A DNA stretch of 48,531 nt, from positions 1 through 48,531 of the forward strand of contig NW_021834450.1 of NCBI RefSeq assembly GCF_006345805.1, read 5' to 3'. The stretch is from Octopus sinensis. Lineage: Eukaryota. A model generated the notes under the pieces. That model ran no database searches and was not told the origin of the DNA. It saw only the letters and a list, made by a program, of their open reading frames with translations. This document shows positions 1,681 through 45,303 of this stretch, piece after piece. The stretch's first letter is position 1. Each line of letters starts with the position of its first letter. The translations under genes were made by a program, and so were the position numbers.

Positions 1681-4467
<2,787 letters not shown>

Positions 4468-4476
4468 TAATAATAA

Positions 4477-4835
4477 ATTTTCCCTGATGCAGTACCAGAC
4501 AGTGGCTCTCGTGGCTTCTGATCTTAACTGATTGGAAGTGTTATCATGTACATTGTTTTGTCTTGGTATAAAAGATGGGCTACAGTTAATATTCTGCTCA
4601 ATACCATAGATTTGCTTCTCGGTTGTTTGACCGTAACCAGTTGAGCATGTCCCTTAGTGGCTGGCGATATGTGCATCTCTGATCAAGAGCACAAGTAGTG
4701 ATGGAGCATCATAGCTGTGTGTTGAAAGGAATTCTTAGAGGTTTGAATCATTCACCTTTGGAAATATGTGTGATTCGTTCAACATCCTTAAAAAACCCTT
4801 ATTCAGGGACCTTTTGAGTGGGGTGGGTTACTCAA
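4477..4835 (+). repeat. Interspersed non-coding repeat X, (AAT)n-associated
   Basis: Homologous to about 14372-14758(-) and 35167-35640(+); each copy abuts AAT repeats or an AAT-like tail. Confidence 0.8.
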
Positions 4836-17185: not shown

Positions 17186-17648
<463 letters not shown>

Positions 17649-20048
17649 ACGTGCGCCGTGCCGGGTAGGAGTATCCATGACAACCTCCATCTGATGCGCT
17701 ACATCATACACAGGGTAGTTAAGGATCCTGGCATGGGTGGAGCCCTGATGAATTTGGATCAATCAAAAGCCTTCGATAGGGTAGACCATCACTACTTGGA
17801 GGCTGTCCTTAAAGCGGTTGGTTTCGGTCCAGTTTTCCGCGGTTGGATCGCTGCCTTATACAGCGGCATCCGCTCGGTAGTTCGCGTAAATGGTCATCTA
17901 TCCAGACCTTTTAACATCATGCGTTCGGTCCGTCAGGGATGCCCCCTCTCATCGCTGCTGTATGTATTGACTCTTGAGCTACTACTGCGGAAACTGGCGA
18001 CGCTGAGGGGCATCCCACGAGAGCCTGGATGCGGGAAGAGCGTGTCTGCATACGCGGACGACGTCACTATCATAGTGTCGAGCCACAAGCAGATCGACCT
18101 GGTCGGCGAGACACTAAAAGAATACGAAGCGGTAACGAGAACAAAAATTAACCGGGAAAAGTCAGTGGGCTTGTGGCTCGGCACCTGGAGAAGCAAGCCC
18201 ATGCCGTCCAACAGCGTTTCCATCGACGGACCTGTTAAATTGCTCGGAGTCTGGTTCGGTCCGGACCTCCAAATGGAGAAGAACTGGGGCGAAATAACGA
18301 CTAGGGTGGCCACTCTCACCCAGCAATGGGCTGAGAGAAAGCTATCCCTAAAAGGTCGGGCGGAGGTGGCGAACGCGTACATCGCATCCGTCATCGAGTA
18401 CCTATTTCTTTACTACCCACAAGGGGCTAAACATAGAAGGGACAAACAAGGGCAGACAAACGGATTAAGTCGATTATATAGACCCCAGTGCGTAACTGGT
18501 ACTTATTTAATCGACCCTGAAAGGATGAAAGGCAAAGTCGACCTCGGCGGAATTTGAACTCAGAACGTAGCGACAGACGAAATACCGCTAAGCATTTCAC
18601 CCGGCGTGCTAACGTTTCCGCCAGATCACCGCCAAATGGAGAAGAACTGGGGCGAAATAACGACTAGGGTGGCCACTCTCACCCAGCAATGGGCTGAGAA
18701 AAAGCTATCCCTAAAAGGTCGAGCGGAGGTGGCGAACGCGTACATCGCATCCGTCATCGAGTACCGTCTGACCGTCGTGTCTGGTCCCGACCCTACCATC
18801 ACCAAACTGGAACGCATACTCTTCCGCTTCCTGTGGAAGGGAAGCGTTCCGATGGTTAGGCGATCCATTTGCTGTCAACACCCGTTAAATGGAGGGCTAG
18901 GCATGCCGTGGTTGATGATGCGCAGACATACGCTGAGACTGTGACATCTCCGGCGCTTCATAGACGACGGTGAACAGGTGTGGTCACCTTTTGTGCAACG
19001 CGCTTTCCCGCAGCTCGTCTCCTTGGCCGAACTACAATCGTAGATCAAACAGAGATCGAGACTAGGCGAATGGCACCGCAAGTGTCGCGTTGCTCTCAAG
19101 CAACTCTGCCATCCGGTGCCAAACTTGTGCGACTTCATTACAACAAAGGCATTCTATAGAGGATTAGTGGAGGGGAGGTGCGACGACGTCCTCGGGCAGA
19201 ATCTGGGCGTCGACGAGGAACACCTGACCCACCTGTTCAGGACAACTTTCGGGCCGGGACCTATGGACAATCACTAAAGATCCCTGGCCTGGCATGCTAT
19301 CGAGAAGCATTACCTGTTCGAGATAAGCTCTACAGGCACGGTTCGAGACACACTGGACCGACTTGCCCGAGATGCGGTCAGAGCGACGAAACCGTTCTGC
19401 AAGCACTCGTGCAGTGTCCAACAATTTCCGACCTGTGGGCTTATGCCGAACGCTGCTGTCACGTGTGGGACGAGTCCGCCTGTCGACCGAGTCTATCGTG
19501 AAAATTGCTCCGCCTTCTTCCCTCGACCGGAAAAGCAAGGCTGTTTTCATCGTACAGGTGGCCATGGTGAAAGAATGTGCGTGGTGGACTCGAGCGAAAG
19601 GATTAGAGACCAACACTTACCTCTCTGACCAATCGCTCATCAACTTTTTCAAGTACCACTTGAAAAGGAAGGTGAGAATGGAGAGGCAGGTTTTCTCTCG
19701 TGAAATTTAAAAAAGAAAGGTGGGTGAATGTAGCAAAGATAGTGCTCGCGAGTGACGAAACCACTTTGAGCATGATCCTGTAAATCGAAAAAAGAGAGAG
19801 ATAGCACTTTGCTCTCATGTGTTTACCTGAGGTTACCGTGGTCTTTTCTGTAGGCTTTTCTTTCCACGGATGAACCTAATCTTATTTCTTACTTGTTAAA
19901 AAAGCTCCTTCTGTGAGACACGATCCCTTTTCATCGGAATTTTACATTTGTTCCCTTTTTTCCTTTTTCTTTTCCATTTTCGAAAAGAAAAGCTCTACAT
20001 TTGTATTTGTCCCCTCTGTATTCAGCCCTGTGTGGCCAATGAAGAAAG
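17649..20048 (+). mobile_element. 5'-truncated Tx1-clade LINE (RT to 3' UTR), interrupted by a SINE
   Basis: TCAVPGRSIHDN, LDQSKAFDRV, RQGCPLS, AYADD, CPRC..ETVLQALVQC; (TCTA)n on both sides. Confidence 0.88.
18403..18624 (-). mobile_element. tRNA-derived SINE family C (central gcctttcatcctttc.gggtcg..aaataagtaccag)
   Basis: Homologous to tandem copies at 30331-30560 and 30561-30744(+). The central block resembles the MetaSINE domain from memory (unverified). Confidence 0.8.
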
Positions 20049-20342: not shown

Positions 20343-22250
20343 TTGAAAATGGCAACTAGAAACCACGTGGCTAGCCCGCCAGTCATGCAGAACGGTAGCA
20401 AAACACTATTGCTACCACTAGCTGCTAAACATCGCAGCGTGAACACCTGTCACCACCATCACCACCACCAACAACACAACAACAAATCTAACGTCGCATT
20501 CACCATCGCCGCGACCAAAGACATTAACTTAGATTTCCCCTCACTCCCCACACCACTTGTTGATGATAAAGGGACAGAGAAAGGGATTTCAAAAATGAAT
20601 ACAAACGAAAACATGAATGCCAGCACCACCACCATCACCACCAACAACAACAACAACGAAATTGGCACAAAGCCGCCTACCAAAGACAACACCGCCAACA
20701 CCAACACCACTACTACGACGTCAAATGCTACATCCAAGCCTTCTGCTGCTAATACCGCCAACCCAACACACCACTACCATGACTTCAATTAACACTGCCA
20801 CAATTAACACTTCTACTGCCAAATTCAAAACGAATTTTGCGGACGTAACAAAACAAAAAAGAACAATTGTAACATTCACCACACAAGAGATAAACCGCAC
20901 AAAGGCACTCTTCTCCAAAGAAGGAGACAAATTGCACCTTCATATTCCACAACACATCGTGGAAAACACGCAAAAAAAAACAATAATTTATAAAGTAATA
21001 AACAAAAAAACAAGAAGAACAGAAAATGCACCGCAGGAAAAAATCGATAAATGCCTTCGTCCTGTATGGGACTCCTAGGAATATATCAGTTGGGGAAACA
21101 AATTTGGTACAGTCCAAGTACGTTTCCTCAACGAAAGTTTAGCAAAACGTTTTTCCACATTGGAGCTACATTCGGACGACTTGGTAATGATACCAGTCTA
21201 TTTAAACAAAAGGGTCACGAAAGTCCAAATAAAAAACATACCATTTGATGTCGAAACACAATGGGTGGTCTCTGCCATCTGCTTTGAAATGTCAGAGACA
21301 ATGTCAGAGACAAACATCCTGGAAATCGCGGTTCTAGGAGAGAAAGACTATGTGGGCAAATCAATCGAATTCCTGCTTCAATTGGATGAAGCAGCAAGAG
21401 AGAAGATACCCACCGCTATAGAACTGCCAGGAGGCTACAAACTCTATATAGTGGTAGAGGGCAGGCGACCACGCTGCTATTTGTGTGGAAGCGAAACACA
21501 CTTGAAAAAGACGTGCCCAACCACTGCACACAAGAGCAACAACAACAACCACTACCACAACCAAAGCACTCCGGAAAAAAAGCTCTACTACCCACACCAC
21601 CATCAACACAGAAGACGACAAGAGAAGCACACCAAGCTAATCCGTCATCAACCAAAAACCACTCGACACCTGGAAAAATACCAACACTACCATCAACAGC
21701 AAAACCCAAAGGAACAGAAAAACAAAGAAAACACACACAAACTGATCCCCCATCCCTTATACCGCACTCAACACACACAAACACTCAACAACCAACAACA
21801 ACGAAAACAACAACACAACCACTTACACAGACATACATAGAAGCCCCTACCCCCTTCTGATTCCTCAGAAATTTCGTCGGAAGACGAAACCAGTGAGGAA
21901 TGGCAAATAGCTACAAAAAGAAGGAAAATAAAGAGCAGAAACACAACCAAACCAAATGCAAACACGAACAAAGCAGGGGGAAATACATCTCCCGAAGACA
22001 TTTCAAAACCCAACGCAAACAACAGCCACACCAACACCACAAAAACATATACAGCAAACATGCTCACAGCCATAGACACCAAAAACACAAATTTGATGGA
22101 ATACATCCAATCAAAAACAAACATAACAGAAGATGACATAAAAACAAACAACACACCCATACACAACACCACCAGACCACATCAAAATAATACACATCTC
22201 CAAAAGTCTGCACCACACACTCAAAGGCATTTTCCCCAGTGCGGTTGGTA
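20343..22250 (+). pseudogene. Tx1 ORF1 (nucleic-acid-binding protein, CX2CX4HX4C), frameshifted
   Basis: Split over ORFs 20343, 20617, 21160 and 21483; RVTKVQIKNIP and VVEGRRPRCYLCG motifs. Confidence 0.7.
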
Positions 22251-22370
22251 AATGCCAAAAATATCTCACAAAGAAACTGTACTGGGATCTTCTCGAGGAC
22301 AAACCAACGGAGGAGAAAGCAAAAACTTTCGAGCAGTAAGTAACCCTCTGTATTCTAATTCATTAGAACT

Positions 22371-25300
22371 ATGATCAAGATTGGTTGTGTAAATGCGCGT
22401 GGCTTGGGGTCCCCTTGGAAACAAGGGTACCTCTTAAATGACATAAAGTCACATAAGTTAGAAATCATAGCCATAAGCGAGACCAGACTCCACAATCCGC
22501 GGGCCCTAAAGACCATGTTTGGCGGACAGTTCAACATTTATTTTTCCCCCTGTCTGCCGAGAATGGGCGGTAGTGGCACCGCGGTACTTTTTCACAAGAG
22601 TCTGGATCTCAATGTAAGGACAATATTCGTAGACCCGGAGGGTAGACTGGTCGTCCTGGATGTCGACGGCAGCAATGGGTGCGCTTTTCGGCTCGTATCA
22701 GTTTACGCACCGCCCTTAACAGGTCGGGCGGATTTCTTTCAACGTCTAGAAGTTTTCTGGGAACGTCTCGTCCTTTACTCTTAGTGGGGGATTGGAATGC
22801 TACCTTGGACACGCATGTAGACTACGTGGGTAGAGATAGGAATAGACGGGGATGCAAATGCCTCAGAGACCTGCTCAGACGCTTTCAACTGTCTGACAGG
22901 TTTCGACTAGACCACCCGAATGCGCCAACGTGGACATGGAGCAACCGCATCGGGTCGTCGAGATCGTATCTAGATAGGATACTGTGTAGGACAGTAGATA
23001 GAGATAGCATAGGATGTCCACAATTCCACATAGTCAGCTACACGGATCACAAACTTGTGACATGTACGCTAGACTTAGGTAAGACACTTAGGCAGGGTCC
23101 CGGATACTGGAAACTAAACGCGTCTTTCCCATCGAGACAAGTTTTCAGAGACCGGATTAGCACACTAGTAAAGAGGGCTTTGACGGGAGCCATCATCAAC
23201 AACAAATGGTGGTTTGCCCTCAAGAGAGCAGTAAAAGCAGAAGCGATTAGGTACAGCAAAGCACTAGCCATAGATAGAAATAGAGTAGAGGGTGAGCTAG
23301 TTAAGAAGCTAGAAGAGGCAATTAGAAGCGGCATCGCATCCGACGTTTTGGCGGCGAGGTTGGCCCTCGACCAACACTTCAACGCCAAACACGAAGGATG
23401 TGCTGTCAGAGCTAGGATGCGTGCTCTAAGGAACGAAGGTGTTGGAGCCGCGAGAGAGGCCCGGGTGGCAGAGGCGCAACAGGGCAACAAAGCCACCATT
23501 CGGTCACTGGTAGATGAACAGGGGCGCGAATTGCTCGAGCCAAGTAAAATGTGTGAGGCCTTTCAGCAGCATTTTGCCCGACTGTTCGGAACGAGTGGAG
23601 GGCAAGAACGTAGGGTGGACTTCAGTGCCTACCTACATAGCCTACCACGACTCTCGACAAGAAAGGCAGGGTGCTGCGAAGGTGCCATCACGGCGGCGGA
23701 AGTGCGGGAAGCGATGGCAGAATGCTCGAGGGACAAATCACCGGGTTTGGATGGTCTACCCTACGAGCTTTACAATTGTATGCCAGACTTGTTTGGAGAT
23801 CTCTTGGCGGCGGTGTACTGCAACTGGCAGCAAAACGGGAGCATTCCTGGTTTTGTGAGCCGAGGAGCCGTAACACTGCTGAAGAAAGATCTAAACAAGG
23901 GAAATGTAATAGATAACTTTAGGCCCATCACTCTGCTTAATGCAGACTTGAAAATTTTGGCCAAGGTGCTAGCCAAGAGGTTGGCGCTTGTCATCGAGAA
24001 ACTGGTCGACAAGGCGCAAACATGCGCCGTGCCAGGCCGGACCATCCATGACAACCTCCATCTGATGCGCTACATCATAGACAGGGTAGTTAACGAACCT
24101 GGCATGGGTGGGGCCCTGATCAACTTGGATCAATCAAAAGCCTTTGATAGGGTAGACCATCGATACTTGGAGGCAGTCCTGAGAGCGGCTGGTTTCGGTC
24201 CCGTCTTCCGCGGCTGGATAGCTGCCTTGTACAGAGGCATCCGTTCGGTAATTCGCGTAAATGGACATCTATCGAGACCTTTCGACATTGCACGTTCGGT
24301 CCGTCAGGGATGCCCCCTCTCGGCGCTTCTATACGTATTGACTCTTGAGCCACTACTGCGGAAGCTGGCGACTCTAAGGGGCATCCCGCGAGAATTGGGA
24401 TGCGGGACGAGCGTGTCTGCATACGCGGACGACGTCACCGTCATAGTGTCAAGCCACGAGCACATCGAGCTGGTCGGCGAGACACTGAAAAACTACGAAG
24501 CGGTGACAGGAGCGAAAATCAACCGGGAAAAGTCAGTGGGCTTGCGACTAGGCACCTGGAGAAGCAAGCCCATGCCGTCCACCAGCGCCTCCGTCGTGGG
24601 ACGCTGGACCGACGGCCCGGTTGAGTTGCTCGGGGTCTGGTTTGGTCCGGACCTCCAAGTGGAGAAGAACTGGAACGAGATAACGAGTAGGGTGGTCACT
24701 CTCGCCCGGCAATGGGCCGAGAGGAAACTGTCCCTAAAAGGTCGAGCGGAGGTGGCGAACACGTACATCGCGTCCGTCATCTACTACCGCCTGACCGTCG
24801 TACCTTGTCCCGACCCTACCACCACCAAACTACAACGCATCCTCTTTCGCTTCTTGTGGAAAGGATGCGTCCCGATGGTCAGGCGATCCATTTGCTGTCA
24901 ACACCCGTTAAAAGGAGGGCTGGGCATGCCGTGGTTGATGATGCGCAGACACGCGCTGAGACTGCGACATCTCTGGCTCTATGTAGACGACGGTGAACAG
25001 GTGTGGTCGCCGTTTGTGAGGCACGCTTTCCCGCAGCTCGTCTCCATGACCGAACTGCAGTCGTGGATCAAAAAGAGGCCGAGGAAGGGCGAATGGCACC
25101 GCGAGTGTCGCGTTGCTCTCAAGCAACTCTGCCGTCCTGGGTCGACCTTAAGTGACTTCAACACAACCAAAGCATTCTATAGGGGTTTAGTGGAGGGGAG
25201 GTACGACGACGAGCTCGGGGCGAACCTGGACGTCGACGAGGAGTACCTGACCCGCCTGTTCGGGACGACTTTCGGGCCAGGGCCCATGGACAACTTCCAG

Positions 25301-25807
25301 AGATCCCTGGCCTGGCAGTGCTACCGAGAAGCGCTACCCGTTCGGGATAAGCTCTACAGACACGGCTCGAGAAACACGGGGCCGACCTGCCCGAGATGCG
25401 GTCAGAGCGACGAAACCGTTCTGCACGCACTCGTTCAGTGTCCAACAATTTCCGACCTGTGGGCTTGTGTCGAACAACTGCTGTCACGTGTGGGACGAGT
25501 CGGTTTATCAGCTGAGTCTATCGTCAATATTGTCACGCCTCCTTCCTTCAAACGGGAAGGAAGAGCTATTTTCATCATCCTTGTGGCTATGGCGAAAGAA
25601 TGTATCTGGTGGACGCGTCTGAAAGGATTGGAGACAAACACTTTCCTCTCTGGTCAATCTCTCATCAACTTCTTCAAGTACCACTTGAAAAGGAAAGTGA
25701 GAGTAGAGAGGCAAGTTTTGTCTAGCGAATGTTTTAAAAAAAGATGGGTGAATGTAGCAAGAATGGCACGTATGAATGACGAAGCCACCTTGAGCATAGT
25801 CCTATGA
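22371..25807 (+). CDS. Tx1 ORF2: APE endonuclease + reverse transcriptase + CCHC, one frameshift near 22755
   Basis: MIKIGCVNARGL, AISET, GDWN, YLDRI, SDH-like TDH, KSPGLDGL, FRPITLLN, SAYADD, CPRC..HALVQC. Confidence 0.9.
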
Positions 25808-36058: not shown

Positions 36059-36830
36059 TTTTTTTTTTCTTCTTTCAAATTTTCTTCCATTCTTGCCGAG
36101 TGTCTTCCCGACTCCTAGGGCAAAGAAACTCATAGTGTATATTGGTAGGCCATTAAACCAAACTCAGTAGTTCGTTAATTTTTTAAAATTTTTTTTTTTA
36201 AAGTTAAATTAAAATACATGAGCAGCAACAGTTCTCACATCGACAATGCTCTTCTCAATACGTGTGATGTACCAGTTAAGACGATCTTTTGCACTTCTTG
36301 CAGGGATGGTAAGCCAGGGATCATTCTCATATAATTTTCGGTTCCCTTCTTGATCATTCCTAGTGCTCCTACGATCACTGGTATTGTAACCGCCTTGAGA
36401 TGCCACATTTTCTCAATTTCAATGAGTAGGTCTTTATATTTTCTGAGCTTGTCAAACTCTTTCGCTGATATATTATGATCACAGGGGATGCTCATGTCGA
36501 TCAATAAGCAAACTTTATTGTTTTGGTCTTTCACAACAATATCTGGTTTATTGGCCTTGATGGTTCGGTCTGTATGTACTGGAAAGTCCCACAGAATGGT
36601 TACATTTTCTCCTTCAGTTACAGCCTCAGGGTGGTGATTATACCACTTGTCGGCAGTTTTGATATTGTAATGCCGACTTATTAGCCAGTGGAGATATTGG
36701 CCAACTCTGTCATGTCTTAATTTATACTCCACTGGTGCTAAGACTTTACATCCAGAGATTAGGTGGTCCACTGTTTCAATCATGTCGTTGCAGAATCGGC
36801 ATTTGGGTCTGCTCCATTTTTCATCACATT
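36055..36830 (-). mobile_element. 5'-truncated R4/Dong-type LINE (REL domain)
   Basis: ETVDHLISGC, RHD, NKPD..IDMSIP, K..KY; 3' UTR shared with the 14785 copy; (TAA)n on both sides. Confidence 0.9.
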
Positions 36831-36840
36831 ATTATTATTG

Positions 36841-36877
<37 letters not shown>

Positions 36878-36950
36878 ATTATTATATTATTATTATTATT
36901 ATTATTATATTATTATTATTATTATTATTATTTATTATATTATTATTATT

Positions 36951-37003
<53 letters not shown>

Positions 37004-37028
37004 TATTATCATTATCATTATATTATAT

Positions 37029-37078
<50 letters not shown>

Positions 37079-37083
<5 letters not shown>

Positions 37084-37245
37084 TATGTTTGACTTTTGCT
37101 TTATATTTGTACAAGTTGGCTCCAAGTCTCACCCAGAGACCTCAAGGGACAACAGGCTGGAAGTTCATGTTGTTGTTATGCCTAGTGTGCCATATATTTG
37201 GGGGGTGGGGGTGTTGTACTAATGAATGTCTAAAAAAAAAGTTTA
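37079..37245 (-). mobile_element. 3'-UTR-only copy of the R4-type family at 1681-4356
   Basis: ggtctctgggtgagacttggagccaacttgtacaaatataa matches 4298-4340; (TAA)n on both sides. Confidence 0.85.
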
Positions 37246-37248
37246 TTA

Positions 37249-37316
<68 letters not shown>

Positions 37317-37375
37317 CATTATTATTATTGTTATATTTTAAAAAAAGATTGACGTAACTCTTCACAAAGGTAAAC

Positions 37376-40300
37376 AGTCAAGACGAAGAGCACGATTCGA
37401 TTGTAAGTTATTTTATTGAACGATATTTCAACAGTATGTCTGTCTTTGTCAAGATCAAAATAAGCAGTGATAAAAATTCAGAAATTGAAACGTAAAGTAA
37501 ATTTAAACGTGAGCAAGTAGCGTCCACTCGTTGATGGAATGACATCATCAGTTTTTATGTCTTTAACAGGCGAAAAGAAAGAAAAAATAACAGAAAAAAG
37601 AAGACGACAGAAAAAAGGGAAAAAGGAAAGAAAAACAGAGAAAGAAGAATATTTAATCAAACAGCTTTGTATAAGTTTGATGATATTCTCCTGTTATTTG
37701 TTTCATTCTTCCAGGGCGTGATGTTAATAACCTGCAAACATATTTCTCCTCATACATTCTGAGAAGTGAAAGCGAAGTAAATTCAGAATATTTTCTGAGA
37801 ATATGCACTTTCAAGTCTTCTTCAAATTTGCAGCCGCTTGAAACAAAATGTTCAGCAAGTTCTGTCGAACTACTGTTATTGTGGCTGACGTCGAATCTGT
37901 GCCCATTAAACCTTTTGTTTAATTGTTCCGTTGTACAACCAACATAAATTAAGTTGTGTTTCGTGCATTGTGCAGCATACACCAAATGGGAATCTTTACA
38001 TGTTCCACCTTCTGTATAAATCATAACATTTCTGTTATCATTTCTGATGGAATTCACTTCACTCATGTTGTTGCACAATGAACAGGGCTTACCTCTCTTG
38101 CAGCTGTTCTTTAAGGTACAGCGTGTAGATACTCCAATGTTCGTTTTCTTGGAGTCAGATATAGAGGTCAATAATTCTCTTATATTCTTATTCCGTCTAA
38201 AAGCTACAATAGGTGGCTGAGGAAATATCTGTTTGAAACGAGGATATTTTTTCGCCCCATGCTGGTAACTTTCATGAAACACTTTTGAAATGCCAGCGAA
38301 ATGTCGGTGCCAGTTAATCACTAAAGGAATTCTGTCTTCTATTGTATTGTGTTTGCTAAAATTATGCGTATAGGTTTGACCATCTTTGCCAATTTTAGCT
38401 ATTTCATTTGCTATTTCCTTTAATTGTGATTCACTGTAACCACGTTTGACATAATGACATACAAAACCATTTGCATGTTTTCAGTAGTCCCCTATGTCAG
38501 TACAAATGCGTTTTATCCTCCAAAATTGGTATTTCGGATTTGACCGAATAAGATGATGTGGATGATCGGAGCAGTGGTGGAGATAAACGTGAGATGACGT
38601 GGGCTTGCAAAATAATCCTGTCGTTATTCTGCCTCCAGAAAACTTGACTTTTGTGTCAAATAATTCAACGCTAGATTTTGAAAAACTAGACGTAAATTTT
38701 ATGCTGGACTTGAAGCCATAGTTTCTAGCATAACAGTCACAGAAATGCAAGAAGTCCATTAAACTATCCTGTGATCCTTCCCAGACAAAAAATACATCGT
38801 CAATGAACCGTAACCAAAGTATTGGTTCATGACCATGAAAGGATTTGAATGTCTTCAGTAACTGTGTCTCGAATTTCGTCATGAAGACATTAGCGAAATT
38901 AACTGCCATGGGGGTACCCATGGCACAACCCTTTGTCTGGTGGTAAAATCTTTGTCTAAACTTCATTGTGTTACTCTCTAACACAAACCTCAATAATCTA
39001 CAGAGAAATTTTGATGGAATACTTTTGTTTGACCGCTTTTCGAAGTATCCATGCATGCTTCTACCCCTTCATTGTAGTCAATATTGGGATATAAGGAAGA
39101 AACATCCATGGTTACCAAAAAACAGTTCTCAATATGGCCTCGGTGCTTGAAAAAGATTGATTTTAGATACAAAATCAAAGGTATTCCGAATATAGGAACT
39201 TGATCGTTTTGCGGCGGGGACTAGAAAGCCATCCAGCCATTCCGAAATTTTGGCCGTGCGACATTCATATCTGCTGCAAATTGGGCGCATTGGAGGAAAT
39301 CTTTCGAACTTTTTGTGTATTTTAGGGAGACCATAAAATACAGGTGTTCTTCTTTCTGACCTTAAAATCTTAGATTCAGCCTTATTAACGAAATTGCTTC
39401 CTCCATTTCCAGAATTATTTTGTCAAGCTCCTCTCTGTAATTGGGGTTTGGATCGACAGGTAATTCTTCATATGAAGTTTTGTCATGTAAAGCTTCTTCA
39501 CAAGCCGAAATATACTCACTTTTGTCCATAATTACAATAGCCCCTCCCTTATCCGCCATCTTAATAACAATAGAATTGTTATTAGCTAGACGTTGGAGTG
39601 CGTAACCTTGGGAATTTGTGAGGTTGTTCCAGGTGCTTGTGAACATCCATCCCGAACTTTATCTGGACACCAATTGGGATTCTTTTCAATCCAATTATGC
39701 CAGATTCGATCATCATCATTTTTATTTTTTGTAAACATAGGGTTTTCTGACTCCTTGTGACTAGTTTTTTCAAAAAAATATTCTTTCAGCTTGTGACGCC
39801 GGACAAACTGAAATAGCCCTTGAGCTAGTTTATTCTTGTCGAAATTCTTAGTGCTTGGGCAAAAACTCATTCCAAGCTCTAAGACTGAGACATCATCGGG
39901 CGAAAGTTTTAGTTTAGATAAATTTATAACCGACTTATTCTCTAGTATGATGGTCTTTCTCGGGCAAGTGGTTTTCAGAATCTTTTTCTCATTAGATTCC
40001 TGACTACTTTTTGGGCTTTGCTCGAAATCTTCACATAAAGCACGAAACCTATTGGGCGATAAAGTTTGTTCTGTACGTTCATGAGAGAAGTTATAATTTT
40101 TAGTCGTCTTTCTAGGGGCAATCCATTTCTGGGTGGTTTGATAGAAAGTGAGTGACTTCAGTGGTTTTTGTAGGCATTTGAAAAACCTCTACTTTCGGGA
40201 AAGGAACAAATCTATTGTTTTTGAGGCAAAAATCTTAAGTGTGCTCGCATTTTTGACTGATCAAATAGAAACTTCTCTGGAGTGTTTCCAATGACCAGTT

Positions 40301-41517
40301 CAAATGCATAAGCTAGGGCAAAAAGGCCACAATCATATGTGCCAGCTTCGGGATTAATTATTTGAAGTTGTTGAATTGTAGGAACAATGTTTGCTTGTGG
40401 TGAGTACAATGTTGTTATTTGTGCCATTAGTTCCTGCGAAACTGGTAAATTCAAACTGTCATAAATATAAACATTTCCGAAAAAATTAGTTGACAAAACA
40501 AAATGATTGTTCGTGGTGTGATGAATAAACAGTGTGCGGTGTGGATTGTATTTTAGAAATTCCGTGTGAGAAAAAATGGTTGGTTGTATTGGAATTTCTG
40601 GAAAATTTTCCGTTTCTATTTTCAACCCGGCGTCAATGAGTTTATCACATAACATTTGTCCTGAAAGTAAAAACGACTTCTCGTATTTCAAAGCAAATCT
40701 TATCAACCAAAATGCTCCCTTGTCCACTGGCTCAGAGGAATGCTTTTTCAGCTTCTTTTCTTTTTTTGTCTTCAGGGCCGAGATTTTTTTTTTTCAAAGT
40801 TCAGCAAACATTTAAACAAGAAATTCAAACGATTTTTTGAAAAACATACCTTTTCAAGGACACTTGAAATCTCTTTGATGTCTGCATCGAGCAGTGTTAA
40901 TTTTGAACGATAGTGTTCAATAACAGCTTCCATTATGTTAAATGAATTGCTTTCACCAATTAATTAAAACTTTTGAAGCATGAATCGTCAGGCTTTGATG
41001 CACACATTGGTATATTCGATGTAAGACCGTCCGGCATAACTTTCTCTTGCTTGCATGTCTCCAGAAATGACAGAAATTAAGAAGAAAGTGCATATTCTCA
41101 GAAAATATTCTGAATTTACTTCGCTTTCACTTCTCAGAATGTATGAGGAGAAATATGTTTGCAGGTTATTAACATCACGCCCTGGAAGAATGAAACAAAT
41201 AACAGGAGAATATCATCAAACTTATACAAAGCTGTTTGATTAAATATTCTTCTTTCTCTGTTTTTCTTTCCTTTTTTTCCCTTTTTTCTGTCGTCTTCTT
41301 TTTTCTGTTATTTTTTCTTTCTTTTCGCCTGTTAAAGACATAAAAACTGATGATGTCATTCCATCAACGAGTGGACGCTACTTGCTCACGTTTAAATTTA
41401 CTTTACGTTTAAATTTCTGAATTTTTATCACTGCTTATTTTGAACTCGACAAAGACAGACATACTGTTGAAATATCGTTCAATAAAATACAATCGATTCG
41501 CGCTCTTCGTCTTGACT
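37376..41517 (-). mobile_element. Penelope-like retroelement (RT + C-terminal GIY-YIG), degraded, with inverted pseudo-LTR
   Basis: FLETC..VMPDGL N-terminus, VINLS..LELGMSFCP, MDVSSLYPNI, GCAMG, WLRFIDD, VYAAQC..YVGCT..RFNGH. 37376-37812 is repeated in inverted orientation at 41084-41517. Confidence 0.92.
40200..40727 (-). pseudogene. Ulp1/SENP (C48)-like cysteine protease domain within the PLE reading region
   Basis: NNHFV ... YDSL ... DCGLFALAYA ... FDQSKMRAHL gives His-Asp-Cys in CE-clan order and spacing. Judged by eye, no HMM run. Confidence 0.7.
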
Positions 41518-41546
41518 ATTATTATTGTTATTATTTATATTATTGA

Positions 41547-41592
<46 letters not shown>

Positions 41593-41598
<6 letters not shown>

Positions 41599-42665
41599 TA
41601 GTTTTATTTTTATAGCGTGCTTTCACTTCACTACCGAGCGCAGCTCTGTGTGCCTTGGGTATGTGCTGTGATTTGTTTTGATGCTCTGATGGATATTGTA
41701 TGGAAAGTGTTCTGCGTAGGATGTGTGCAGTGCCTAGTAGTGCAATTTTCTGTATGTTATATGTGTTTGTAAGTCCTGGTGTTTTTGTTATGTATTTGTC
41801 TGAATATTTTTTTATCATGCCTAATGCATCTACTATGATAGGAATTGTTTCTGTTTTCAGGTTCCACATTCTAGTTATTTCTATTTCCAGGTCTTTGTAT
41901 TTTGAGAGTTTCTCCATTTCTTTTAGAGACACGTTGTCATCTGCCGGTATTGATACATCAATTAGAAAGCATTTTTTTTCTTCATGATCTCTGGCAACTA
42001 TATCTGGTCTGTTGGCCTTAATTTCTCTATCTGTGTGTATCGGCATATCCCAGAGTATGGTTGCTTTCTCGTTTTCTGTGACCTTTTCTGGTGTGTGCCT
42101 ATACCATCTTTTTTCTGTTGTTATTCCATAATGTTGGCATAGCTTCCAATGTATGTAGGTTCCAACTCTGTCATGTCTGTGAATATATTCCTTCTTAGCC
42201 AGGACTGGGCAGCTAGAGATAATATGATTTATTGTTTCTTGTCCATCTCCACATATTCTGCAGTTACTTGTAATATTTCTTTTCATTACATGTTTTTGGT
42301 AATTTCTGGTGGGGAGGCTTTGGTCTTGTGCTGCAATTAAAAATCCCTCTGTTTCTGCTTTGAGTCCTGAGCTTCTCAACCATTGCTGGGATTTTTCTTT
42401 GTCTATTTCTTTTGCGTTTAGTTTAGTGCAGTATTTACCATGAAGGGGCTTTTCTTGCCATCGTTTTATCATGGCTCGTTGCTGTTCTATTTTTAGTTTG
42501 ATTTCATTTGTTTTATAGCTTTTGTTGTTTCTTCATCATCTTCTTCTTCTTCTTTGTGTTTATTAGGTGGTATGATTTCTTGTTTGTATTTGTCAGCTTC
42601 CTTAAATACTGAGAACAGCTTTTGTTTTGCTCGTGTTTTGCTGCTATCTGGATCAGTTTTCCTTC
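41593..42665 (-). mobile_element. 5'-truncated R4/Dong-type LINE (third subfamily)
   Basis: GLKAETEGFLIAAQDQ, CRIC..HIISSC, RHD, RPD..IDVSIP, K..KY; distinct 3' UTR; (TAA)n on both sides. Confidence 0.9.
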
Positions 42666-44033: not shown

Positions 44034-45303
44034 CGAGGGGCGTTCAATAAGTAATGCCCCTGACCCACTTCCCATAGCAGTAGAGCAACGGAACTTGGCA
44101 CAGTTATTGGTCTTTTTCTACATAGGAACCACTCAGAGTTACGCATTTCTCCCATCGTTTGATCCAGCTCTGGAGACCGTTTTTGTAAAAGACCCCAGCT
44201 TGGTCCTCCAACCACGACGTGACTTTAGAAATCAAGGCTGCATCATCTGGGAAATGCTTTCCTTTCAAAAACAACTTCATGGCTGGGAAGAGGTGAAAAT
44301 CAGAGGGTGCAAGGTCAGGAAAGTAGGGGGGTGATGGAGGAGTTCATAGCCGCACGCCTGTGCTTCTGATCTGGCGACACGCGAGTTGTGGACCGGAGCG
44401 TTGTCCTGCAGGAAGAGGATGCCTTCGCTGATCTTGCCCCGCCTCTTCATTTTGATAGCTTCTCTTAATTTCCTCAAAAGTGAAGCATAATAGGCTCCTG
44501 TAATTGTGGTACCCTTTGCCAGGAAATCTGTCATCACTACTCCGTCCTGGTCCCAGAAGACTGTGAGCATGACCTTGCCAGCAGAGGGCTGCACCCTTGC
44601 CTTCTTTGGAGGAGGTGAGTCACGGTGCTTCCACTGCATTGACTGGGCTTTGGTCTCTGGATCATAGTGATGGACTCAGGTTTCATCCTGTGTAATCAGT
44701 CTTTTGAAAAGGTTTGACTCATCTTCTTGGTACGTCTCCAAATTCATCCTCGAGCACTCGACGCGTTCTTGCTTCTGGAAAGGTGTGAGCAACCTGGGAA
44801 TCGATCTGGCAGACACCTTTTGCATATGCAAATGGTCATGAATGATAGTTTCCACTGACCCGGTACTAATCTTGACCTCATGCGCTATTTGGCGAATAGT
44901 TATGCGTCGATCTTCCAAAATGGCAGCCTCAACTTGACGGACAGATGCCTCATCAATGACAGAAGGGGATCGACCAGATCTGGGAGCTGTTTCCACAGAG
45001 TTCCGACCATGTTTGAATTCACGATGCCAGCGTTTTACAAGGTCATATGATGGGGCATCATCATCATAAGTTACTTTCATTTCATAAAAAGTCTCCCGTG
45101 GTGTGCGTCCTTTCAAATACAAAAACCGGATCACTGCTCGACACTCAACAGGCTCCATTTCACACTTGACTCACTTCAAACACCTGTAATTCAGAAACCA
45201 CAATTAATTCACTATAGAGAAATAAATAATTGCACATGCAAAATTTCAGCTAGATCAAACAAATGCAAGTGGGTCAGAGGCATTACTTATTGAACGTCCC
45301 TCG
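44034..45303 (-). mobile_element. Full-length (1270 bp) mariner transposon with TIRs and TA duplication; transposase disrupted
   Basis: TIR cgaggg(g/a)cgttcaataagtaatgcc.ctgacccactt at both ends with flanking TA. HTH, DET, QDNA and PDLAPSDF motifs; one TGA at 44676 and one frameshift near 44320. Confidence 0.93.

Follow-up and report, generated by a model that had tools for sequence, protein, structure and literature searches.

The question raised by a 48,531-nt stretch of the Octopus sinensis genome (contig NW_021834450.1; the whole stretch is called the window below) is whether a Penelope-like element (PLE) carries a protease within its own coding sequence. Among the major classes of eukaryotic retroelements, PLEs are understood least, and most descriptions credit them only with a reverse transcriptase (RT) and a GIY-YIG endonuclease (EN). 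The original prediction, made from the window alone, placed a Ulp1/SENP-like cysteine protease between two PLE-specific motifs rather than beside the element. We found that the region from 37376 to 41083 on the minus strand is a single PLE, and that the same parts lie in the same order in uninterrupted open reading frames (ORFs) of its relatives, by which we mean proteins (P00xx) and loci (L00x) found by homology. We put at roughly 0.85 the probability that the region is one insertion of a PLE lineage whose single ORF natively includes a Ulp1/SENP-like protease (family C48, clan CE) between an N1/helical module and the pre-RT region, the copy in the window being a fossil.

The order of the parts was established by three-frame translation and motif mapping of the minus strand. 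From the N-terminal side, the element has an N1 motif, a helical K-rich segment, the cysteine protease, a linker with NRFxxL, a pre-RT motif, RT, and GIY-YIG. All of the motifs that the original prediction had listed were on the minus strand, in the order it gave and within about 2 nt of where it had placed them. The parts are as follows.

37376 to 41083, minus strand: main PLE copy, 5'-truncated and decayed (full-length hidden Markov model (HMM) and tblastn; 3' end from comparing the repeat arms)
41023 to 41076, minus strand: N1 motif, FLSFLETCKQEKVMPDGL (family consensus SHRFFLxxCxxxxIxPKGx)
40750 to 40981, minus strand: helical K-rich segment (HMM match 40754 to 40981, E = 3.7e-10)
40191 to 40739, minus strand: Ulp1/SENP-like (CE clan, C48-type) cysteine protease domain, with a frame change near 40230
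39940 to 40190, minus strand: linker with conserved NRFxxL (NRFRAL, 40036 to 40053)
39634 to 39939, minus strand: PLE pre-RT region, VINLSKLKL (39904 to 39930) and LELGMSFCPS (39853 to 39882) (tblastn 39939 to 39634, HMM and motif mapping)
38400 to 39637, minus strand: RT (PF00078, E = 1.9e-7; tblastn, HMM and motifs), with ADKGG at 39542 to 39556, FYGLPKIHK at 39312 to 39338, VTMDVSSLY at 39089 to 39115, and RFIDDVFF at 38787 to 38810
37656 to 38102, minus strand: CX5CX2C zinc-finger-like linker and GIY-YIG EN (PF01541, E = 4.9e-5; alignment), with CKRGKPCSLC (CX5CX2C) at 38073 to 38102, the GIY-YIG motifs LVYAAQC at 37965 to 37985 and LIYVGCT at 37932 to 37952, and the ORF end, KLFD, at 37656 to 37667
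37376 to 37655, minus strand: 3' untranslated region (UTR) of the PLE

The RT is of the PLE type. Besides the RVT_1 match it has the DKG motif and both the pre-RT and N1 motifs, and the GIY-YIG domain lies C-terminal to it in an order that is collinear with the family HMM. An HMM of the N1/helical region that was built without the window matched 40918 to 41073 (E = 1e-5) and 40754 to 40981 (E = 4e-10). The KWxxPK(K/R) motif that relatives have upstream of the position of NRFRAL is degraded in the window copy. The insertion also has a partial inverted copy (a pseudo-long terminal repeat, pLTR), a 5' truncation, and microsatellite flanks, all of which are PLE hallmarks.

The protease is an integral part of the ORF in intact relatives. 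We used as query the conceptual polyprotein of the window copy, with X at each break, and found P0011 (1245 aa), an uninterrupted ORF with 37% identity and 100% query coverage. P0012 (1358 aa) and P0013 (1111 aa) are further uninterrupted, end-to-end ORFs, and each of the three is the sole gene on its own contig of 3.8-4.9 kb. An exhaustive search with a profile of the protease only, against representatives of 50%-identity clusters, gave 7449 proteins at E<=1e-3 and 108 at E<=1e-30; a profile of the N-terminal half gave only seven matches. In eight more proteins (980-1461 aa), which come from different 50%-identity clusters, the protease lies approximately 170-480 residues from the N-terminus. 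The long protease-bearing PLE proteins include P0025, P0026, P0028, P0032, P0033, P0038, P0043, P0047, and P0079, and the same start is seen in P0060 and P0134, which are N-terminally cut, and in many shorter fragments. Altogether, uninterrupted ORFs of 1111-1461 aa occur in at least ten families that are more than 50% divergent from one another, and the order of parts in them is identical: N1, helices, protease, KWxxPK...NRFxPL, pre-RT, RT, and GIY-YIG. Pfam found RVT_1 and/or GIY-YIG in the intact relatives (GIY-YIG in 7 of the 10 scanned). The distance from N1 to pre-RT was 395-613 aa in the protease-bearing elements, compared to 137 aa in a protease-less PLE.

Two of the intact relatives also have ends that fit the tandem arrangement and microsatellite targeting of PLEs. 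The contig of P0011 (L001) has a terminal direct overlap of 58 nt (1 to 58 and 4636 to 4693, 98%), implying a tandem unit of 4635 nt, and the contig of P0012 (L002) ends in (TA)n. In an AlphaFold2 model of the N-terminal half of one relative (predicted local distance difference test score (pLDDT) 83, predicted template modelling score (pTM) 0.79), a three-helix bundle is packed beside the protease; this bundle had no significant structural analogue in the PDB.

We conclude that the architecture is not a local chimera, and that the protease is integral to the ORF, ancient within the lineage, and catalytically complete in intact members. The single open frame joining N-terminus, protease, RT, and GIY-YIG that the original prediction called for is present in the intact relatives, and its proposal that a PLE lineage carries a Ulp1/SENP-like domain holds for at least ten families. 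The placement of the protease inside the element is supported by the ORFs of the intact relatives, by the collinearity of the window copy with them, and by the selection and phylogenetic results that follow.

The protease and the RT have diverged together. In a 15-sequence alignment, mean pairwise identity was 0.45 for the protease, 0.48 for RT, 0.34 for EN, and 0.23 for the N1/helical region. The identities of protease and RT were correlated (r = 0.69 over 105 pairs), as would be expected if both evolved together in one ORF.

Comparison of closely related copies points to selection on the protein. Three near-identical copies of the P0011 family, from different contigs, each have an indel-free ORF of 3738 nt. 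One (L005) comes from a marine metagenome, a record of project PRJEB4352, and another from the Logan assembly of run ERR1726888; at least two of the three are from separate sequencing runs. The ratio of nonsynonymous to synonymous substitution rates (dN/dS) was 0.19-0.33 for the whole ORF and 0.03-0.21 for the protease, the latter from small counts (4-10 synonymous differences per pair in the domain). For the linker it was approximately 1.3 in two of the three pairs, and the third pair had no synonymous differences there. Judged from these substitution ratios, the protease is under purifying selection.

The protease-bearing elements were monophyletic in 99 of 100 bootstraps of a neighbour-joining tree of RT that also included the eight protease-less PLEs returned by the search; the window copy grouped with P0047. 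This monophyly favours one acquisition of the protease, in the ancestor of a distinct PLE lineage. The window copy, P0013, P0047, and P0079 retain the CX2-5CxxC motif upstream of GIY-YIG, which the other members have lost, so the lineage spans both states of a character that is used to tell PLE clades apart.

The domain has the catalytic residues expected of a CE-clan protease, with one substitution in the window copy. The relevant positions are given below.

40503 to 40505, minus strand: predicted catalytic His (CAT), in NNHFV
40458 to 40460, minus strand: predicted catalytic Asp (GAC), in YDSL
40347 to 40349, minus strand: Glu (GAA) at the position of the oxyanion Gln
40329 to 40331, minus strand: predicted catalytic Cys (TGT), in DCGLFALAYA
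40236 to 40262, minus strand: DQSKMRAHL
40196 to 40228, minus strand: CLKNNRFVPFP, after the frame change

His, Asp, Gln, and Cys are invariant in all of the intact PLE-embedded domains of the 15-sequence alignment and align with the catalytic positions of SENP1. In P0011 the domain comprises approximately residues 185-364 (31-364 if the helical bundle is included), with His258, Asp273, Gln310, and Cys316 as the predicted catalytic residues. Gln occupies the oxyanion column in 14 of 14 aligned relatives, and the Glu of the window copy is the sole exception. The original prediction had read this Glu as decay, and we agree because Gln is invariant elsewhere and the window copy has at least eight frame changes. 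The PLE-embedded domains also keep an aromatic residue (F, W, or Y) behind the catalytic His.

Profile and structure comparisons identified the family, and direct searches with the window domain did not. By phmmer, the window protease matched an Octopus bimaculoides protein (P0001) at E = 4e-71 with 73% identity; its source names that protein 'ubiquitin-like protease family profile' (PROSITE ULP_PROTEASE). The protease segment of the window matched intact relatives by tblastn at E = 1e-31 to 1e-37. The original prediction had proposed a search for a C48 match as a check, and its outcome was divided. When the protease, N-terminal, and linker segments of the window were scanned against Pfam, no C48 match appeared, and a single-sequence search of the PDB with the window protease gave nothing. 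In contrast, a profile of 11 domains matched SENP1 in the PDB (1.6e-5), followed by a Ulp1-like SUMO protease, SENP5, the CE-clan deubiquitinase OtDUB, and SENP8. An AlphaFold2 model of the P0011 domain (pLDDT 89.7, pTM 0.88), to which the window domain is 40% identical, was compared to the PDB with Foldseek. The top 24 matches were SENP1/2/3/5 and Ulp1-type deSUMOylases, most with template modelling (TM) scores of 0.63-0.73 and probability 1.0; weaker matches included pS273R of African swine fever virus (ASFV) (TM ~0.5), adenain (0.39), and YopJ/PopP2 (~0.3). The C48 assignment thus comes from the profile and the structural model and not from a direct Pfam or PDB search of the window domain, and on that evidence we take the domain to be a real, divergent C48-like cysteine protease of the CE clan.

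The precomputed annotations of the relatives list only RVT_1, GIY-YIG, DUF8422, and HTH_animal.

Several observations weigh against our explanation as a whole. The intact relatives are all from metagenome and Logan contigs, and none was seen from the genome to which the window belongs. Apart from the protease-bearing elements, the RT tree contained only those eight protease-less PLEs, which are not curated clade references. Pfam PF02902 (Peptidase_C48) matched neither the window domain (E<=1) nor 10 intact PLE proteins (E<=0.1 or 0.01); it does match a stand-alone relative, P0005 (E = 6.4e-6, 26.6 bits against a cut-off of 20.7). That PF02902 misses the PLE-embedded domain may be why the domain has gone unannotated. 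The first Trp of the Gly-Gly 'tunnel' of SENPs is apparently not conserved, in an alignment judged by eye, so the specificity may differ from SUMO. Lastly, Rfam searches for a hammerhead ribozyme were negative: neither the window nor L001 gave a match at the gathering score, and there was nothing at E<=10 within the 3' region of the window or at E<=1 in L001-L003; a loose core pattern (CTGANGA...GAAA) was also absent from the 3' UTR. Hammerhead ribozymes are common in the terminal repeats of canonical PLE clades and absent in Naiad and Chlamys.

Intact relatives have a conserved leader that ends in a 2A-like motif. All 10 N-terminally complete relatives begin with a leader (MxDLxxYRxRIGxF), followed by a hydrophobic stretch and, just upstream of N1, a 2A-like motif with the consensus NDPS(V/I)ExNPGP, or IELNPGP, at residues 17-153. 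The region is found in P0012, P0023-P0026, P0028, P0030, P0032, P0033, P0038, P0043, P0047, and P0079, and at two loci as follows.

L001, approximately 380 to 590: leader/2A region, in an ORF that extends upstream of the called start
L002, 118 to 310: leader/2A region

The main copy in the window begins at the N1 motif and has neither the leader/2A region nor the start of the ORF, because it is 5'-truncated at 41083. In intact elements, the 2A-like 'StopGo' motif would release the hydrophobic leader co-translationally. 2A-like peptides at the N-termini of proteins of apurinic/apyrimidinic endonuclease (APE)-type non-LTR retrotransposons were described by Odon et al. 2013, as cited in PMC13405545 and PMC12338488. 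The likeness to those peptides is a motif of the D(V/I)ExNPGP type after a short N-terminal leader in a retrotransposon ORF; the difference is that those elements are long interspersed nuclear elements (LINEs) or Ty3-like and this one is a PLE. We found no report of a 2A-like peptide in PLEs in the searchable literature, in which the reports cover ORF1p and ORF2p of LINEs and one Ty3-like element.

We propose that during retrotransposition the protease would most likely serve as an isopeptidase and take SUMO or a different ubiquitin-like modifier off its target. The target may be host factors, in chromatin silencing or in DNA repair at the integration site, or the element's own protein, and such a role would parallel those of the Ulp1 and OTU domains acquired by other classes of transposons. 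We favour a deconjugase because the closest relatives in sequence and structure are cellular deSUMOylases, because the nearest relatives outside PLEs are small C48+PHD proteins with nothing to process, and because the polyprotein has no conserved Gly-Gly or other candidate cleavage site. A fuller scenario, which we regard as speculative and rather unlikely to hold in all of its parts, is that these elements form an undescribed and widespread clade of marine-animal PLEs, the first with an enzymatic protease; that the isopeptidase is required for transposition and strips SUMO or a related modifier from silencing or repair factors, as a counter-defence against SUMO-dependent heterochromatin guided by PIWI-interacting RNAs; and that the 2A-like motif also frees the leader.

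Equally doubtful, in our estimate, is the chief functional alternative, that the protease works in cis as a polyprotein processor, like adenain or ASFV pS273R, and cuts the N-terminal module from RT-EN. In its favour, the domain has a module on either side of it within one long ORF, viral proteases of the CE clan figure in its weaker structural matches, and the linker that follows it is poorly conserved, fast-evolving, and predicted to be disordered (pLDDT <50 at model residues 359-382), as would be expected of a cleavable tether. However, nowhere in the polyprotein was a Gly-Gly dipeptide or other candidate site shared by at least 75% of members, the best matches in both sequence and structure were to cellular deSUMOylases and not to viral processing proteases, and the close relatives that are small, stand-alone C48+PHD proteins argue against a processing role as they do for a deconjugase. 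The original prediction had offered polyprotein processing and a counter to SUMO-dependent silencing as possible purposes, and both are speculative.

We think it improbable that the domain is an irrelevant passenger, a structural or binding module such as a SUMO-binding pseudo-enzyme, or a YopJ-like acetyltransferase. The scores against Pfam C48 are below threshold, the distant stand-alone relative P0005 gives a weak match to the YopJ family (E = 0.002), and the residues of the substrate tunnel differ from those of SENPs. Against this, the four catalytic residues are invariant in intact members, dN/dS within the domain is low, and the YopJ/PopP2 structures are far poorer matches than SENP/Ulp1 (TM ~0.3 vs ~0.7).

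It is very improbable that the protease segment is separate DNA, a transposon or a host exon that was inserted in or assembled beside an ordinary PLE at this locus only: the same protease subfamily does occur outside PLEs (in C48+PHD proteins, at the C-termini of polycystin-like proteins, and beside YqaJ and transposase-like regions) and the window copy shifts frame on both sides of the protease, but the order of parts recurs in at least ten divergent, independent ORFs that have no interruption, the segments on either side of the protease (N1/helical and NRF/pre-RT) show homology and collinearity in the window copy, and protease and RT co-diverge. The particular case of a nested insertion, which the original prediction had named as grounds for abandoning its reading, was rejected. 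No termini or repeats bracket the protease segment, and collinearity with the intact ORFs is complete.

The copy in the window is dead. A full-length HMM of 14 relatives, with the window excluded, was collinear with it over 41121 to 37659 (positions ~77-1266 of 1267), in the successive frames -0, -2, -1, -2, -0, -2, -1, -2, and -1, that is, with at least eight frame changes. There is an in-frame stop at 38481 to 38483, and tblastn with intact relatives confirmed both the collinearity and the broken frames. Beside the main copy are the following.

41084 to 41517, plus strand: inverted, 5'-truncated partial copy of the PLE 3' end (inverted repeat, 434 nt)
36801 to 37340, no strand: (ATT)n/(AAT)n microsatellite, target-site context, flanking the 3' end of the main copy
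41518 to 41600, no strand: (ATT)n microsatellite, flanking the 3' end of the inverted fragment and running into the tail of a LINE fragment

The inverted fragment comprises the last 50 codons of the EN region and the 3' UTR, and its ORF at 41055 to 41243 on the plus strand repeats the C-terminal peptide HILRKYSEF...KLFD. The arms of the inverted repeat (37373 to 37812 and 41084 to 41520) are 97.1% identical over 442 aligned columns. Since the inverted copy of the 3' end directly abuts the N1 end of the main copy on its 5' side, there are two 5'-truncated copies that lie head-to-head, both with 3' ends that enter (ATT)n. This is the 'inverted pLTR-like' arrangement that is typical of PLEs. Complex tandem and inverted insertions and a bias for microsatellites are known for PLEs (PMC8557442), and the insertion in the window fits this description.

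Two details of the insertion stand apart. Approximately 45 nt at 37331 to 37375 (GTTTACCTTTGTGAAGAGTTACGTCAATC TTTTTTTAAAATATAAC, minus strand) separate the main copy's 3' end from (AAT)n, and nothing corresponding to them is seen where the inverted fragment ends on its 3' side; they may be a remnant of the target, a 3' extension, or a later insertion. Also, the repeat arms are 97% identical, yet the main ORF has at least eight frame changes. Either the source copy may already have been defective at insertion, having been mobilised in trans, or the arms may have been homogenised.

The nearest relatives outside PLEs are C48+PHD proteins of 220-312 aa on large eukaryotic contigs (P0005 and P0186-P0190). 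One locus with such a relative (L004, 8001 to 8729) has it among a DUF1759-bearing gene and RT-bearing fragments. The C48+PHD family may have been the donor of the PLE protease domain. The same protease subfamily, with a Cys/His-rich PHD-like tail, is also found at the extreme C-terminus of long polycystin-like proteins (P0101, P0113, P0126, and P0128; for P0101, Pfam gives PLAT, Polycystin_dom, and PKD_channel). Two explanations offer themselves for these proteins: a domesticated fusion, or gene models that are chimeric with a transposon lying downstream.

Elsewhere the window is a graveyard of transposons, with a nearly intact LINE and further fragments of LINEs and mariner.

21160 to 25807, plus strand: nearly intact LINE
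22679 to 25807, plus strand: ORF2 of that LINE, 1042 aa (Exo_endo_phos, RVT_1 (E = 9e-31), and zf-RVT)
21160 to 21840, plus strand: ORF1-like frame of that LINE, 226 aa (no Pfam match)
17382 to 18557: degraded RT fragment related to the LINE at 21160 to 25807
36235 to 36783 (minus strand), 41591 to 42472 (minus strand), and 3101 to 4163 (plus strand): three diverged C-terminal copies of another LINE family
44676 to 45158, minus strand: N-terminal fragment of a mariner-like transposase, a 160-aa ORF (Mos1-type HTH_48 and HTH_32)

The three diverged LINE copies have a Cys motif of the zf-RVT type and the end ...KYKDLEIEI...AHILRR, and each has (AAT)n/(ATT)n arrays next to it. Two of the copies (36235 to 36783 and 41591 to 42472) lie on either side of the microsatellite that contains the PLE pair.

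We compared this architecture to known systems. The main recent survey (PMC8557442) reports the following accessory domains in PLEs: PHD, SAP, a zinc knuckle that resembles gag, and, in a single Chara family, a weak Josephin-like motif. Ulp1-like proteases are known in NeSL and Utopia LINEs (PMC4640811), in Ginger1, sometimes with PHD, and in Mutator-like DNA transposons (PMC2836005), and in Cryptons (PMC3212892). The original prediction had stated that such proteases occur in NeSL-type LINEs and some DNA transposons and that none is known to have been described in a PLE, and the searchable literature bears this out: we found no description there of a C48 domain in a PLE, in a search that covered the literature and did not extend to Repbase or Dfam. 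Consensus sequences of such elements, with the domain unnoted, may already have been deposited in those databases.

The element is like the canonical EN+ PLEs (Neptune, Nematis, and Penelope/Poseidon) in its 5' truncation, its inverted or tandem partial copy, and its microsatellite target, and like Neptune and Nematis in the CX2-5CxxC linker of the window copy, P0013, P0047, and P0079 (PMC8557442). It differs from them in having at least ~260 extra residues between the N1/helical module and pre-RT, made up of the C48-type protease and the conserved KWxxPK...NRFxPL linker. Other differences are the 2A-like NPGP leader of the relatives, the absence of a detected hammerhead, and the loss of CX2-5CxxC in a subclade. 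A Josephin-like motif in the PLE Chlamys-1_cBra and in Dualen LINEs (PMC8557442) is a precedent for an accessory motif of deubiquitinase type in a PLE ORF. In Chlamys-1_cBra, unlike here, the motif is of the Josephin family (with weak homology) and is a C-terminal extension, in a single family of plant-lineage PLEs with an N-terminal EN.

NeSL and Utopia LINEs share with the element target-primed reverse transcription and a Ulp1-like protease upstream of RT in the same polyprotein. They are a different class of retroelement, with a restriction-like endonuclease and a LINE-type RT, and their protease is terminal whereas that of the PLE is embedded between element-specific motifs. Ginger1, Mutator-like elements (KI-MULE), and Crypton are further cases of the recurrent capture of C48 by mobile elements (PMC2836005, PMC3212892), and Ginger1-9_HM is reported with the same Ulp1+PHD pairing that the nearest non-PLE relatives of the PLE domain have (PF02902 and PF00628). 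In contrast to the PLE, these are DNA transposons with the protease fused to or beside the transposase; the PLE protease is inside the RT-EN polyprotein and lacks a PHD finger.

The window copy itself is a fossil, and the value of the finding is in the lineage that it reveals. The natural intact copies are a direct handle for functional tests. There is also a lesson for annotation: the domain is invisible to PF02902 and the elements are labelled only as RT or DUF proteins, so that routine pipelines would miss the architecture. The conserved 2A-like leader would extend StopGo recoding to PLEs. With the protease, the chemistry of ubiquitin-like modifiers would have been recruited independently by another class of transposons, after NeSL/Utopia LINEs, Ginger, MULEs, and Cryptons, and this recurrence points to a general interface between host and transposon at SUMO and ubiquitin.

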